Assembly: GCA_001949185.1 (NCBI GenBank)
Contig: BDGG01000008.1
Coordinates: 434,001-498,000, forward strand
From: Ramazzottius varieornatus
Lineage: Eukaryota > Animalia > Tardigrada
Direction: 5' to 3'
DNA: 64,000 nucleotides
Shown: one piece after another, positions 40,117 through 62,850 of the stretch
Numbering within the stretch: position 1 is the stretch's first letter
Layout: each line of letters opens with the position of its first letter
Notes under the pieces: model-generated
The model's database searches: none
Seen by the model: the letters and a program-made list of their open reading frames with translations, nothing else
What the model was told of the DNA's origin: nothing
Program-made: the position numbers and the translations under genes

Positions 40117-50350
<10,234 letters not shown>

Positions 50351-50488: not shown

Positions 50489-50536
<48 letters not shown>
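50475..50536. repeat. (CA)n microsatellite downstream of the AP-2 stop
   Basis: Direct reading: about 30 near-perfect CA units. Confidence 0.95.
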
Positions 50537-50537
<1 letters not shown>

Positions 50538-50935
50538 TCTTTCGCGTCACCTCTTCTCCGGTATACGTATAAAATCTGACAGCGTACCTAATGTTGTTTA
50601 CTAAATTGCACGTTTTCGTTTAAACAGGAAGCAGACGTTATAGGCAGTCTTGTCAATGAATACTCATCATTCGTCTAAACAAACCGATTTTACTCTTTTC
50701 AAGCAAGCCGATTTTACCGAACAAACCGATTTTACTCTTTTGTACATGCTTTTCTTGCTAATTACAACCCTTCAATGTGCTAGAAATTTGTTTTATTCAT
50801 TTCTGTTCAGAAGTGTTCGGTCACGCAATGAAAAGCTGCTTTCTGAAAAACTGAAAAAATATCTTCATCGTTGTACAGTAAATTACTTTTCGAACAGGAA
50901 AAAAATGAGCAGAATTGAAACTTGGAAAAGAAACT

Positions 50936-53900
50936 CTAAAAAACGGACGGATACCTCGGGTTGAGATGCATGAGAGCAGCCTTCGCGGCATTGCTCTTCG
51001 CAGCCCGCGCGTTATTGCCGCGGCCTTTGAACGTACCTTTCCCCAGGATGGTCACTTGCATGGTACAACGTCCGTTTCCCAATGGCTCGACAGCCCTGCA
51101 ACCCCACATCAAAAGTACTTACAACCACAGCAGCACTTGGGTAAGAGTAAAGAAGCTAGAGCTCAGGTACGTACCCGAAGCGGCAATTGGGTCCTTCGGA
51201 TTCCATCAGCTCTCTCACCGAGTTACGCGGGCAGTGCCGAGCCACGTATTCTGGAACCAACAACGGAATTTCAAATTTGCTTATTACGCAGTCACAAGGT
51301 TCCCAGAGTCACATTTTACCTAGCTGTGGTCGCATCATGTTGTAGTAGACTTTGAAAACCACATCCAAGGACAAACCGCTATCGAGGAAGATCGCTCCCG
51401 CTACGGCTTCGAAGACGTCACCCAGGGCTTTCGGCGCCTCAGATTCCTCAAAGCCGGCCTCTTCCGCCTGCCCTTCTTCGTCGTCGCAGTTAGTGCATAA
51501 CTATGCAACGGAAAGTATTAAACATGAGACACGGAGCAAGTTCGGACGAGAATATCTTCGATACAAACCATGTCATCTTCCAGTCGGAGTATCTCACTGT
51601 TTTCCTCCCGGACCGTTTCGACGAACGCGTCAATCATGTTATGCAATCGCATACTGCGGAACTTGATGTGGTTATGGTAGTTGTACTTGACGGCCAAGTG
51701 TGACAATGTCCTGTTGTTGACCAGTGCCGATCGCATGTCCGACATGACACCCGGTTTATGTATCCTTCAAACGCGCGACCATTGACATGAAGCAAGAAAA
51801 CCGTGCGAAACAACAGAAGCCTTTTGTGGGCTTGCGTAATGTACTTACTTAACATCATCGTAAACGTAACGAGTGACCAGGAAGTCAATTAAGGCATCAC
51901 CCAGATATTTCAACCGCTGATAACAGTCGGTGATGTCGTTTGGATCGTAGGAGCTGTGGGTGAGAGCCTGAAGAAGGAATGCTTTGTTCCGGAACCTAAT
52001 AAACAAGCCTGCTATTTAGAACATAGGCAAATAAACCAGACCAAATCTTTATCCCAAATGGCGCATATTTTGGTTATCAATAGCTGACCGTGTGCGTCAC
52101 TTGGGAAAAAGATGTGGTTCAAAGGATTTGCTTACTTTTCTACACTTACTTGTATGCAATGCGAGCTTCGAAGTCATCAAAGCCCGCTGAAAGCCGCGTC
52201 AACACCAGCTCGGCATCCGGATCATCCTTCAACATCGGATTGGGGATGTCGGACGCGGTGAAGTACCCAAAACGGTCCGCCAGTATTTTGCTCTGACTAC
52301 TAGCCAACTCAGGAAGTACATGCAGACCCATCCAAGACATGAACAACTGAGCACTTCGTGCACTCGAGTGCATCAGGAACACCCCCGTCATGGCTTCGAT
52401 CATGTCGGCAACCGTCTTGTCTTCTAGCGCTTGGTAGACTCTAGGTGACGGAAACTTCTCGGCCTTGGTCCCTGAGTTGGCTAGGAGCATGTTGGATTCT
52501 TCTTCGTCAAAGTAGTATCCAGGGGGCACGAAATTCTCCAAAGGCTCAAACGCTTGGTTGAGCACGACGTGGTGCAGATCGCGTTCCTTCGCCAGCCGGT
52601 ACAGATTGTAGTTGGAAACCTGTAGACCACATTGTGTACATAAATTTAGTGCAAGATTAGCCAACAAATTTAACAAAATTGTTTTCCCAAGTGGCGCACT
52701 CCTTCGGTGGTACTTGCTGGAAGCGTGCGTCGCTTGGGAAAACACTGTTGTCGAGTCCTAGTCCCAGAAAGAGATGCATTTCTGCAAAAACCCTAACCTG
52801 CTGGTCGCACAGCTGCGTCAAGTAACCTTCTTGTCGTTTCGGAAAACGGAAGAACATGTGAATGTAGGAAGACAGTTTCAAGAAGGAGTCGCCAATGACT
52901 TCCAGACGTTCCAGGTTGAAGCCATCGCTGGCTTTGGCTGTTGTCAGCGCGTTGAGTATCTGGTTCGGGTCAGGTAGCGCCACCTTCTTGACATCTAGAT
53001 GGAACTCGGCATCCACGACGACAGGGGCTTCGGCCAGGTGGGCAGCCGGACCGTAGTGAGAAAGCTTTATCCGCTTGGCCTTTCCGTTTGGGATCATCGT
53101 CAGAGTTGTCTCGGGGTTAGCAAGACGCTGCTGTTTCTTCCACTTCTCCATCATGTAGAAGCGCTGTCTTTCGTAAGTGGCATAGACCAGCCCACCGTAG
53201 TCCGCAATGGTCTCGGCGTTCACATCAGCGACTTCCGGGTTAGCGGCCGCGCCTCTGGGCGGAAGTGAATTGGGAGCTTTATCCATGTCGACCTCCGTCG
53301 GCTCCGGCTCTGCTTCACCTAAAAAAAACCAGTTTTTCTGCCAACAAAGTTGTGCTAGGCACGATATATTCATAGCCTGTACGATATTTTCATAACACAT
53401 TTCGAAGAAAAAGGGCTTGGTTGACGCGATGCAACTGTTCCTACTCAGTTTCCCGGAATTTCAGTGTTGGAAATATCACGCTTCAGATACAGAAATGTCG
53501 ACAAGTGACATTTTTCACGTACCTGCAACATGAACGAGACATTGCGCATTACTATTCTGCCCACTACTGACACTTGCGATGGGTGGTGTCTTGTGAAAGT
53601 TGTATAGCAGAGGCTGCCATCCCTCTGGATCAGCAACCTCGCAGCCAACACCAATTTCTTCCCGGAATCTTTGTCGCAGATCCAGGACTTCGCAGTACCA
53701 ATGCAGACGGTGCATCACGGCAGGCAAGATCAAGGCTTTAACATACAGAGTGGCAGAGATAGGAAAGAGCTGGCAGAGTTCGGGGACCAGCATCAGATGG
53801 TCCCTGTTCCTCTGTTCGCTTCGCGGCTTCGATAACTGCTCCTCCTCCTCCTTTTGCGCTTGCGGATACCTCAGAGTGTTCAACCTGTAAAAACAATGCG

Positions 53901-56900
53901 ATGTGTAATCCAATCAAAACATCCTTATTGGTAAATCCGAGCCAAAATAGACTACGGCAAATGCATAATGAGCTCGGCAAACAAACTCGACAGGATTGTT
54001 TTCCCAAGCGGCGCACGCTCCTGGTATTATTGCCTGTAAGCATGCACCACTTGAAAAACTGATCTGACGGAGCTTCTTTGCTTAGCTCTCAGATAAACTT
54101 TCAAGAAGGTCAATTCGGAAAACATCTCGAGTATTAGATTCGGAACCCAGAATTCAGGAAGAATACTGACTGTCGGCTGCAGAAACAGGTCTCTAGGGTC
54201 GGTTGGTCCTGGTGCTGAATTTCGATCCCGTATTTCTTCTCAAAATACTCAGCATACGACATGCTTTCGTCCACCTTGAGCGCCATTCTTGGTGTGATAT
54301 CTGCCCTGATCCTAAGCACCAAATATCTTTCATCTGCCATCTTGTACCAGCGTACTACGACGCCATCCAAGAACTTCTCCGCTACGATCTTCATTCTCTT
54401 TCGGTTTTCAGCAGGCTGCGACACCACGACGTACTGCGCAGGGTCCTTCACCTTGTCGATCAGTGCCCAGTCAATGTCTAACGATCTCGTTAAAGGTACA
54501 GTGTACAAAGCTTCGTCAGTCACTTTAGGATCGAAATGTACGGCGATGGTTTCTGAGAAGCGTAGCACGTGCTCAAACACCGCGCAGTGAAACTTTTGAA
54601 CAGCATCGATCTGCGAAGCGGATAGCCGAAGTCCGTCACGGACTTCGGCCATCTCAATTCTGTACTCGAGCTTCAGGACATATACGAAAAACGGAGGGAT
54701 CTGCGGAATGGGGGAAGCGGAAAGCAAGCCTATGAAATGGCTCTCACTGCTCATGAACTGGGACGCCGAATTCAGTTGAGGCTGCTGACTCGGTATGGTG
54801 CGTATCACGTACAGGTACAGTGGGCGATCCGGCACGGGACGACAATTTCGCAGTGCAGCGGCGCTCTATGAACAAGAACAGCAAGACTTCAAAGCAAATC
54901 TGGTCTGACTTTCAGTGCTTTCCTACCCGTTTCACGTAGTATTGGCGTCGTCTTTTGGTACCAGGAAGAGGTTCGTTCTCGGGCACCATCTCCTTCACAT
55001 GGTCTCCCATGATGACTTCCATATCATTCAACAGCTGCCGCTCTTTCGGCAGCAAGTTCAAATCGAAGGCTCCTGCTTCGTACAGCAAGCGACAACACTC
55101 CAGCGCGGCGGACTGCTTCGCTAACTTTCGGTTCTTCATCAATCGACCCTTTGAAAACGATACCAAACATCCGATTTGCCAACAGAACCGCAGGTTGGCT
55201 TTGTACTTTACGTAAGACAGACTTGACTCACAGTAACCGGATGTTTCACTTCAGAGCTCAGCGGCATGTAGATGCGGTACAGAAACCAGCCGGTGCCTAT
55301 CGTATCTTCTGTATCGAGGAACTGGCCACGTGTCGCACTGAGGCTACTTCGTTCTGTTGGCATCGATTTGAGGTACCTACGAGTAACAGTTACACGTGAA
55401 AACTGTGTCCTTACCAAAAAGAACTACAGGAAGAAATCGGTTACTGTTGGAGAAGGGACATGGCCGAGCTCAAAGTGACCACGGCGCTCGATCCTGAAGG
55501 ACGGAATGAGTCGTGTGGCTTGTCGTCGAAATGCACTTTCTGCTTCCGGGCGTCCGGAATACTTCGCTCCAAGCAGGTTTTCTTCAGAGTATCGTCCATA
55601 GCGATATAAGCAGACAAATCCTTCTCAGTCACAGCACGATCCTCGTCGGACGTGAGTACGATGTATTTGGAGTTCTGGGCTCTCGCCCTACCTTTGGACT
55701 GCAAGTACGAGCAATAGTTCATAGGTCGATCAAACCTGTAATTAGGCAAAGCTAAATGTTCGGAAAACATACCAAAATCGAATCTTAGACGAACTTGCCG
55801 ATAAGTACGTACCGAACGATGAAGTTGCAGCTTGGCACATTCAGTCCTTCTTCCACTACACTGGTCGCGATCAACAGGTTGATATCCCCACGGCGGAACT
55901 TCTCGATGGTAGCCTGCGACTGCCGATAGCAAAGCTCGACCCGGTGGGGAAATTGGCCTGTATATTTCAAACGTCCTTGTACAACCGATGACAAAACTAA
56001 TATACGTAGACGAAATATCGTATTGACAAATTTGCGTACCTGCGTCTCCGTAGTCAGTTAGTTGGCCTACCAAGTAGCCACTCTTGATGTGCGAAAACTC
56101 ATTGTCCCTCTTGAGAGTCAAGAACTCGAAGAACTTGTGGAGGACCCATGCATCGTACCGTGTCGTTACGAAGACGATGCACTTCATACCTAAAACCACA
56201 GAAAAATAAGCAAGTCTGAATTCTTTATGTTTGAGATGCAGATAAGCATGCCTTACTCGCTTCTTGTTCCGAGGGTTTATTAGCCCGAAGTACTTCCATC
56301 AGTTTCTGCAACTTTGTGGACGACACTGCGAGAAGGCCGGCGACATCTCTGCTTTCGACTTTATGGACGCGGAAGTGAATCTCCAAGAGAGTTCCGAACA
56401 TGTGAAGCTCTGTGATGGCCATCATCACTGGCTGCGTCATCTCTTTACTAAAGCAGCTATTCTTAAGCATCATTTCGAAATCCTTCTTGATCATACATGC
56501 GATCTACGAAGTCATAAAGATAGCAAGATTAGTCCAAGAAGCGTATAAGTGATCTGAAATCTGTGGGCACCTGGTATCCGCACCATGGTCCCAGGATTCG
56601 TAGTGAATTGAGCAGCTGGGCGAATGTAGACTTGATGAGCGCTAGAGATCGGGCAATGTTCATCCGGAACTTGTCGTCCGTGGAATTCGTGAAGGCGATA
56701 TTCTTCTTCTGCTGCTTTGCTTCTTTCTCCAGTGCAGTCATGTAGCTTTTAGCCGAATCGATCCAGCTGATGTATTTACGGATACCCTCGACAGCTTCTT
56801 CTTCCCCACCTCCCGCCTGGTTTTCCTATGACAAGAACCCATTAAATGAGTAAACTTCACTGACCGAATCACTGCTAGGTATTTTTTCAGATGAAGTGAA

Positions 56901-57880
56901 TACGGCTACCAACCTTGAAACTTTCCAGACAGAGTGTTGGTTTAGCCTCGTGTTTCTTGATGGACTCATCGATGGATGTGCAGACTTTGGCGCCCAGACA
57001 ACTCTCCAGCTTCTGGATGAGTCCTTCCATTTCTGTGCCCACCTGTTCACCCTTCTTGATCTTGCAGTTGATGATGGAAGCAGTGAGACCTACGATGCGA
57101 GGTCGCTGTTCGGCTAGGCGATCTTGAATAATTTGCATGATTTCCCTGTACGGGTGATCACTGACGGCGTGATGGCACTCGTCAAAGATAAGCAAGTTGA
57201 TTCGGGCAACCTCTATAAAAATGAAAAATGAGACATTATGGGATCAAAGCCTGATACTTACATACGGAACGACCGGAAGTAACTTACCTAGCAAAGAGTG
57301 GAGAAGCAGTTTCAGTAGAATATCATGGATCAGCACCAAGATGCAGTTGTCTTCAAGCTGCTGGTCCCAGAACTCTTTTGTCCATGATAGGCCAGGACAA
57401 TTACCGTGATAGCCTTCCACCGGAAACGATGTCCAGCGTCGGATGTAATTAACCTGCTGCTCCACCAGAGGTACAGAAGGCACCACAAACACCGTGCGTT
57501 TTCCTCCTTCGTTCCAAGGCTTGAAATCGTACTCGAGACGTTTCATAATGCTTACCGCGACTTGCATTTTCCCCATGCCTGTTAAAACCAAACCAGTAAT
57601 CAGCACGTACAAAAACCACAGCACTAGTACACTCATATCGACCTACCGGTTCCAAGAGCGCAGATGATATTCTCTTTCATAGCTTTGTCAATCATTTCTT
57701 CCTGCAACATTTGATGCGTTGATAATAAGAAGGATGTTATTCCCACTTGTTCACAAGATAGATCAACGACCATACCTGATATGGTCGGTTTAAAATAACG
57801 TTGTCCTGATCTATGGGCAAATCTTCCTCTTCTTCTCCGTCCTGAGCTTCCCCATCAGGAGGATACACCATCCCGTCCAT
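50936..57880 (-). CDS. DICER1: Dicer-family endoribonuclease (helicase-DUF283-platform-PAZ-RNase IIIa-IIIb-dsRBD), more than 20 exons
   Basis: [105 protein letters not shown], and dsRBD ending [13 protein letters not shown]. Confidence 0.95.
52023..54090. mobile_element. Three palindromic element copies in Dicer introns (about 52023-52135, 52655-52765, 53970-54090)
   Basis: For example TTTTCCCAAGTGGCGCAC-N25-GTGCGTCGCTTGGGAAAA, and GAGCTCGGCAAACAAACTCGACAGGATTGTTTTCCCAAGCGGCGCAC. Confidence 0.82.
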
Positions 57881-61982: not shown

Positions 61983-62394
61983 CTTTCGATTTTTCTCCGC
62001 ATTGTCGCGTTAGCTTCGAGAACACTCTCATAATTGATCAGACAATCGATTTGTCGTTTGTGATGTTTACAAAAGCTGCTTTCACCGTCTTCATTGTCTG
62101 TCGGTTCTTCCCTGATGGGCCTGCCTTGGTTTTGTCGATCTGTGAAACCCACTTTTCCGTTACTCGGTGGTGGGAATCTTCCATTCGCACTTTTTTTTCG
62201 TAAGACAGACAATGCAGAACCCTTCTCTTTCTGTGCTGGTGTCATGAGTGGACGGACATCTCGTTGGGAAACTACAAAAAGCCTGAGCTTGACACAATTT
62301 ACCGTTTTTCAGCTATTCCAACAGTTTTAATTCCTTGTTTTACTTCGAGAAATTTACGTTTTGTCGGAAGCAATATCGGGCTTTTGGTTCTACG

Positions 62395-62850
62395 ATGGCT
62401 GACGGTAAACTCGTGGCTCTGCTCTTGTCCTCGTTGGCCTGCAGTGTCTGGGGAGGAGGATCTGGTTGGGGTTCGACGTATGTTCCACCGACGTATCTTG
62501 TCGGCGTCGGTTCGCGTCTATTGGGAAACACACTCGGCTTCAATGGCGCGGGTCTTGGCGGCATCGGATTCCACGGCGCGGGCCTCGGCGGTCTCGGCTT
62601 CTCAGGAGCCCCCCTTGGGGGATTAGGGTTCTCGGGAAATGTGCCAGGTGGCCTTGGTTTCAACGGGAACGGGCTGGGAGGAATTGGGTTTAACGGAAAC
62701 GGACTAGGCGGGCTGGGCTTCACTGGTCCGGGTCTTGGAGGCGTCGGGTTCAACGGAGTCGGACTTGGAGGACTAGGTCATCATGGAGCTGCTCTCGGTG
62801 GTGTGGGCTGGGCTCCTCCTGTGCTTGTGAATCGTGGCTGGAGCCGATGA
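62395..62850 (+). CDS. Secreted Gly-rich protein with about nine 10-aa repeats (structural/cuticle/eggshell-like)
   Basis: Signal peptide MADGKLVALLLSSLACSVWG; repeat (L/I/V)GFxGxGLGG with a 30-bp period. Confidence 0.8.
   Translation: MADGKLVALLLSSLACSVWGGGSGWGSTYVPPTYLVGVGSRLLGNTLGFNGAGLGGIGFHGAGLGGLGFSGAPLGGLGFSGNVPGGLGFNGNGLGGIGFNGNGLGGLGFTGPGLGGVGFNGVGLGGLGHHGAALGGVGWAPPVLVNRGWSR

Follow-up and report, generated by a model that had tools for sequence, protein, structure and literature searches.

Lysine at the first metal-binding glutamate position of RNase IIIb in the Dicer paralog tDicer2 of the tardigrade Ramazzottius varieornatus

Known changes of the IIIb glutamate and the tDicer2 gene

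Within human Dicer's RNase IIIb domain, the Glu residue E1705 binds metal A together with D1810 and E1813 (PMC13334501). So far, a Glu-to-Lys substitution at this position has been described only among disease alleles, namely those of human DICER1 and DROSHA. Here, RvY_12855, a Dicer gene of the tardigrade Ramazzottius varieornatus that encodes Lys at the corresponding position, was analysed in a stretch of 64,000 nucleotides (nt) from contig BDGG01000008.1 (positions 434,001 to 498,000, or C8:434001-498000), which is hereafter called the window. Coordinates refer to the window unless a contig is given. The genome searches covered the 55.8-Mb assembly of 200 contigs, and the queries were single exons or the deposited protein (P0152).

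The human mutation E1705K is found in DICER1 syndrome and in sporadic tumours. In molecular dynamics (MD) simulations, the catalytically competent two-metal state reached 28% in E1705K versus 61-71% in the wild type; E1705K ranked with the milder of the hotspot mutants, and its competent occupancy was above those of D1709N, G1809R, E1813G and D1810Y (PMC13334501). The IIIb hotspot alleles lose the 5p products and keep the 3p products (PMC13507251). The DROSHA mutation E1147K affects the same position; it is a recurrent mutation of Wilms tumour and impairs processing (PMC4062040). In the E. coli mutant E41A the metal affinity is lowered, and the resulting loss is Mg2+-dependent and can be rescued by high Mg2+ (as quoted in PMC4062040).

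Three Dicers of R. varieornatus have been described, and the tDicer2 clade was placed as sister to the arthropod Dicer-2 (Weinberg et al. 2025, PMC12505628). Expression of tDicer2 was reported throughout the life cycle in the same paper (PMC12505628). Its text does not contain the words 'catalytic', 'active site' or 'residue', and the catalytic residues are not discussed there. RvY_12855 could be identified as tDicer2 from Table 1 of PMC12505628, which agrees with it in length (1670 amino acids, aa) and in the accessions of its orthologs, OWA52488.1 and XP_055329020.1.

The protein of RvY_12855 (GAV02265.1, 1670 aa) is annotated as 'hypothetical protein RvY_12855 [Ramazzottius varieornatus]'. 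The complete coding region of tDicer2 lies at 50936..57880 on the minus strand and consists of 20 exons and 19 introns, with a coding sequence of 5013 nt. When the exon chain was threaded through the minus strand by a script, the deposited protein was reproduced exactly; the reading frame is open throughout, and the introns are of the GT-AG type in 19/19 cases. Pfam domains, all above the cut-off, include DEAD/ResIII (residues 32-198), Helicase_C (399-533), Dicer_dimer (607-698), the platform (745-865), PAZ (890-1023), two Ribonuclease_3 stretches, and Dicer_dsRBD (1580-1662). The protein thus shows the multidomain architecture of a Dicer, namely helicase, dimerisation, platform-PAZ, tandem RNase III and double-stranded RNA-binding (dsRBD) domains. 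The genome of R. varieornatus contains three Dicer paralogs (tDicer1, tDicer2 and tDicer3). A preliminary description of this DNA had taken the gene for one of several Dicer paralogs; this was correct, and the other two are canonical.

Lys1447 and the other catalytic residues

The minus strand in window 51934-51896 contains TGT TAT CAG CGG TTG AAA TAT CTG GGT GAT, which encodes ...YQRLKYLGD. The AAA codon (51908..51910, minus strand) specifies Lys1447, which takes the place of E1705 in human DICER1, a ligand of metal A. It belongs to exon 16 (51849..51995, minus strand), with which RNase IIIb begins and which carries the signature YQRLKYLGD; the frame of this exon is a 56-aa open frame at 52015-51848. 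When all Protein Data Bank (PDB) chains were searched with exon 16 using phmmer, the matches included Drosophila Dcr-1 (E 2e-21), human and mouse Dicer (5e-20), and Drosophila Dcr-2 (9e-13). The alignment spans residues 1675-1724 of human Dicer (5zak) and shows yqrlKylgd opposite yqrlEflgd, with query residue 33 (Lys) opposite residue 1705. The preliminary description had reported both the AAA codon and its equivalence to E1705, and both were confirmed, by direct reading of the minus strand and by the phmmer alignment, respectively. AAA is a single G-to-A transition apart from GAA, and the codon is located outside long homopolymers and repeats. The Lys1447 observation is confirmed as exact, and is beyond chance variation.

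The remaining acidic residues of both RNase III domains are intact, as had also been described; LGD, PKALGDVFE, ERLEVIGD and ADMIE are all present. In RNase IIIb, the kept residues include Asp1451 (GAT, 51896..51898, minus strand; equivalent of human D1709) and the second motif PKALGDVFE (51408..51431, minus strand) with Lys1556, Asp1560 and Glu1563, which correspond to human K1806, D1810 and E1813. Asn1484 in the LVNN motif (AAC, 51713..51715, minus strand) is also kept; it corresponds to human N1742 by its offset from E1705 and not by direct alignment. The LVNN motif is 100% conserved across 156 other aligned Dicers, and a role of N1742 in human Dicer was described (PMC13334501). In RNase IIIa, both motifs are canonical: the signature ERLEVIGD (52888..52911, minus strand) provides Glu1227 and Asp1231 (human E1316 and D1320), and the second motif D-M-I-E (52395..52406, minus strand) provides Asp1333 and Glu1336 (human D1561 and E1564). 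The four acids of the IIIa site are therefore complete (E1227, D1231, D1333, E1336), whereas the IIIb set reads K1447, D1451, D1560 and E1563, the first being Lys. Judged by these signatures, the R. varieornatus tDicer2 is a Dicer by homology that departs from the IIIb catalytic signature.

Comparison with the described systems showed both similarities and differences. The tardigrade change shares with human E1705K the aligned position and the Glu-to-Lys replacement through the same G-to-A transition; in the tardigrade gene as in the tumour alleles, the other three IIIb acids and the whole of IIIa are unaltered. However, the tardigrade Lys is the germline reference of a free-living animal, and it is found in a Dicer-2-like (small interfering RNA-type) paralog and not in a microRNA (miRNA) Dicer, with two canonical Dicers alongside. 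DROSHA E1147K is likewise a Glu-to-Lys change at the equivalent metal-binding Glu of IIIb, a hotspot in Wilms tumour (PMC4062040); whereas it concerns another enzyme, with a primary miRNA substrate and a somatic, heterozygous, dominant-negative setting. The engineered nickases (E. coli E41A and D45A, human D1709A and E1813A) are similar in that one composite site is disabled and a single-strand cut would be expected; however, these are laboratory constructs, and the tardigrade protein is natural. Within the tardigrade tDicer2 clade (PMC12505628), RvY_12855 is the R. varieornatus member and agrees with its orthologs in domain architecture, but no other member has Lys at the IIIb Glu position.

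Two protein database searches were pooled to survey the IIIb signature position, which is Glu in 196/197 Dicers and Lys only in the R. varieornatus tDicer2. The E1705 column is also 100% Glu in the alignment of 156 other Dicers, which suggests that the Glu residue matters. An alignment of orthologs and paralogs had been suggested in the preliminary description, and the two orthologs and both paralogs analysed carry Glu at the Lys1447 position. The signature is YQRLEYLGD in the Hypsibius exemplaris ortholog OWA52488.1 (P0151) and YQRLEFLGD in the Paramacrobiotus metropolitanus ortholog XP_055329020.1; the full-length identities of the R. varieornatus protein to these orthologs are 58% and 51%, respectively. 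The search of the genome with exon 16 gave just two other matches, both of them paralogs with Glu. One, tDicer1 (YQRLEFLGD), lies about 218 kb away on the contig of tDicer2; in the other, tDicer3 on contig C2, an intron interrupts the signature (YQRLEF/IGD). In both paralogs the acid sets of IIIa and IIIb are complete. The intron in the tDicer3 signature (C2 ~1,958,357) falls between YQRLEFI-G and GD, and this intron position is absent from tDicer2 and tDicer1. An alternative or mutually exclusive exon encoding Glu was also considered and could be rejected, because tDicer1 and tDicer3 are the only other matches of the exon in the genome.

A quick maximum-likelihood tree was reconstructed, in which the R. 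varieornatus protein groups with OWA52488.1 and XP_055329020.1 to the exclusion of other Dicers. The tDicer2 clade has a Shimodaira-Hasegawa-like approximate likelihood ratio (SH-aLRT) support of 100, and Ramazzottius and Hypsibius cluster together (96) with Paramacrobiotus outside. Because both orthologs carry Glu, this topology places the origin of the Lys on the terminal branch of Ramazzottius, later than the divergence from Hypsibius; on the aligned sequences, Lys1447 is derived on this branch. A protein search with the 56-aa frame found no independent exon-level fragments with Lys, and one unrelated match, which carries Glu. Two exon-level fragments (P0002 and P0005) of tardigrade origin, 66-68% identical to exon 15, were found in a metagenome contig of 27,379 bp in the European Nucleotide Archive (ENA).

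The evolutionary rate of the gene was compared by a relative-rate count with three taxa, in which changes unique to R. varieornatus or to H. exemplaris were counted with Paramacrobiotus as the outgroup. RNase IIIb has 22 unique changes in R. varieornatus versus 19 in H. exemplaris (chi-square 0.22), and 109/185 sites are identical in all three species. The counts are 18 versus 16 for RNase IIIa and 4 versus 4 for the dsRBD, and no acceleration is seen in these domains. Over the whole protein, 183 changes are unique to R. varieornatus versus 134 to H. exemplaris (chi-square 7.6), and the excess lies mainly in the helicase and connector regions; the branch lengths in the tree are 0.57 and 0.41, respectively. 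At the IIIb columns that are at least 95% conserved in other Dicers, there are six departures specific to R. varieornatus, of which K1447 is the only radical one. By these comparisons, tDicer2 is not a decaying gene, and its IIIb domain is still constrained.

Companion changes in the Ramazzottius and Hypsibius lineage

Other catalytic motifs of tDicer2 have changed as well. The helicase Walker A motif (57565..57573, minus strand) is G-K-M, with Met58, instead of G-K-T. The motif is GKM in R. varieornatus, GKN in H. exemplaris and GKT in P. metropolitanus, and 26/29 Dicers with a recognisable motif have GKT. The R. varieornatus tDicer2 thus lacks the GKT/S that a processive Dicer-2-type helicase requires for ATP hydrolysis; the DECH box and motif VI are kept. 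At a helicase motif, the H. exemplaris tDicer2 has QSRARARA. ATP hydrolysis by tDicer2 may have been lost in both Ramazzottius and Hypsibius, as judged from the Walker A residues.

The RNase III domains also show changes in this lineage. A Tyr replaces the otherwise invariant Phe beside the IIIb Glu position in both Ramazzottius and Hypsibius. In the H. exemplaris ortholog (OWA52488.1, residues ~1230-1243), the IIIa motif is IGE for IGD at the equivalent of human D1320, an Asp-to-Glu change that is unique among 226 IIIa signatures. The changes in several catalytic motifs of tDicer2 hint at a functional shift. The companion changes in Hypsibius suggest that the published domain-level survey of tardigrade Dicers missed divergence that would be functionally relevant.

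Proposed consequence and rival explanations

The observations are probably best explained by a real substitution in an intact and reportedly expressed tDicer2, through which the IIIb cleavage would be weakened or abolished. Once the lineages of Ramazzottius and Hypsibius had parted, one G-to-A transition (GAA to AAA) would have replaced the first metal-binding Glu of IIIb with Lys. The positive charge at the metal A site is expected to weaken metal binding, and thereby to slow or abolish cleavage by IIIb, whose target is the strand running 5' to 3' from the PAZ-bound end, i.e. the 5p arm of a hairpin. With IIIa untouched, the enzyme might nick one strand of double-stranded RNA (dsRNA), or be a very inefficient dicer, and tDicer1 and tDicer3, both with complete active sites, would carry out the canonical dicing. 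A one-sided, nicking or 3p-biased Dicer is a reasonable proposal by analogy with human E1705K, DROSHA E1147K and E. coli E41A.

Several points weigh against this explanation. The base rests on one assembly, from which the deposited protein also comes, and the Lys is known from one strain of one species. The remaining active-site residues are all intact, which would fit a recent change or a retained function as well as a settled loss of activity. Moreover, residual IIIb activity is possible, since this position seems to be milder than the other three ligands: E1705K is mild in the MD simulations, and E41A is rescued by high Mg2+.

If the gene is confirmed, an intact, expressed and otherwise conserved Dicer would naturally carry a disease-type change. 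It would be a test case for a one-site Dicer in vivo, whose outcome could be nicking of dsRNA, small RNAs with an arm bias, or binding without cleavage, and would illustrate the division of labour among duplicated Dicers. The gene can be studied experimentally, and genome editing in tardigrades has been reported (review discussing CRISPR-Cas). A literature search on the efficiency of RNA interference in R. varieornatus gave nothing specific.

The substitution might also be real without an evolved loss of function. It is unlikely, though conceivable, that the Lys is tolerated and that IIIb still cleaves, for example given Mn2+ or more Mg2+, or because this Glu is the least critical of the four ligands; tDicer2 would then be a two-strand Dicer. 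This would agree with the Mg2+ dependence of the E. coli E41A loss, which is not absolute, with the residual competent occupancy of E1705K, and with the conservation of the other IIIb residues, as expected of a working site; whereas the hotspot recurrence of E1705K, the impaired processing by DROSHA E1147K and the 100% Glu column in all other sampled Dicers argue for a disturbed site. There is a rather low but appreciable chance that a slightly deleterious mutation of recent date went to fixation by drift, in a narrow lineage or the clonal reference strain, and that the Lys is not an evolved specialisation; with dicing provided by tDicer3 and tDicer1, such a mutation could be tolerated. The sequenced strain is a parthenogenetic line from a single founder animal, which would favour drift. 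The two canonical paralogs, the single transition from GAA, the intact catalytic residues and the lack of acceleration in IIIb are also consistent with a young change. However, the Hypsibius ortholog also departs from the canonical motifs (the IIIa Asp-to-Glu change, the GKN of Walker A, and the shared Phe-to-Tyr change), which suggests a longer trend in the clade. In a further, still tentative possibility, the tDicer2 of hypsibioid tardigrades would be leaving ATP-driven two-strand dicing. The loss of the Walker A Thr and the Phe-to-Tyr change, both in the shared ancestor of Ramazzottius and Hypsibius, would have been followed by the IIIb Glu-to-Lys change in Ramazzottius and by the IIIa Asp-to-Glu change in Hypsibius, and the R. 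varieornatus tDicer2 might have been retained by selection as a strand-selective nicking Dicer or as a non-cleaving factor that binds dsRNA.

Explanations in which the Lys is not a property of a working protein are less probable. An assembly or base-calling error, with GAA as the true codon, is improbable. It would agree with the support of the base by one assembly only and with the exon-level search, which yielded no independent fragments of R. varieornatus; but the codon is not in a long homopolymer or repeat, and a random single-base error at exactly the Lys1447 codon is a priori very unlikely. The adjoining Phe-to-Tyr change is common to Hypsibius, so the motif is truly diverging in the clade, and several catalytic motifs of tDicer2 are changing in the superfamily, which lowers the likelihood of a simple base-calling error. 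That the gene is a non-functional duplicate or a decaying pseudogene seems highly improbable, and this explanation is largely refuted by the intact frame. Although one catalytic residue and the Walker A Thr are gone and the Ramazzottius branch is longer than that of Hypsibius, the 5013-nt frame is open over 20 exons with canonical splice sites, the Pfam domains are above their cut-offs, IIIa, IIIb and the dsRBD are without acceleration, and expression was reported (PMC12505628).

It was also proposed in the preliminary description that adenosine-to-inosine (A-to-I) editing could restore the Glu. Editing of the first A of AAA would give Glu in the mRNA, and the protein would be canonical or conditionally active. 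AAA is indeed one A-to-G change from GAA, and A_deamin (PF02137) domains above the Pfam cut-off, which could belong to ADAR or ADAT1, are encoded at three loci (C2:3184120-3185216, C2:3220181-3221155 and C4:3504123-3505187). A hairpin near the codon, which had been described together with the editing idea, was also found. This imperfect stem-loop (about 52142-52017) has a minimum free energy of -40.5 kcal/mol, and its end is about 110 nt upstream of the codon. However, this hairpin is self-paired and not paired with exon 16, and other copies of the dispersed repeat family of which it is a member lie outside the gene. No inverted repeat covering 51890-51930 was found within +/-700 nt. In a 1-kb fold of the pre-mRNA, the pairing probability of the target A is 0.01, and the predicted partners of its flanks vary with the fragment folded; the A is thus not within the stable duplex used by ADAR. 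The 5' neighbour of the target A is G, which is the least favoured context for ADAR. The proposed rescue by editing was therefore not supported, and it seems extremely unlikely.

Intronic repeats and neighbouring features

Intron 15 (51996..52149, minus strand) is 154 nt long, and it carries the imperfect palindromic hairpin as a copy of a dispersed repeat. Introns 12-15 (window 51996-54170) contain copies of this palindromic repeat and are 154-286 nt long, versus 61-88 nt in the other fifteen introns. Further copies in the window are located outside the gene, at 46291-46332 and 49919-49976. At least nine other copies were found in the genome, with 71-83% identity. From these copies, the repeat looks like a miniature inverted-repeat transposable element (MITE) and not like a Dicer-specific structure.

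A dinucleotide microsatellite of the (AC)n type lies just downstream of the Dicer stop, at about 50500-50560 on the plus strand, and translates as HT repeats. Another open frame, at 62335-62850 on the plus strand and unrelated to the Dicer finding, encodes a glycine-rich protein of repeated GLGG(L/I)GF(N/S/T)G units.

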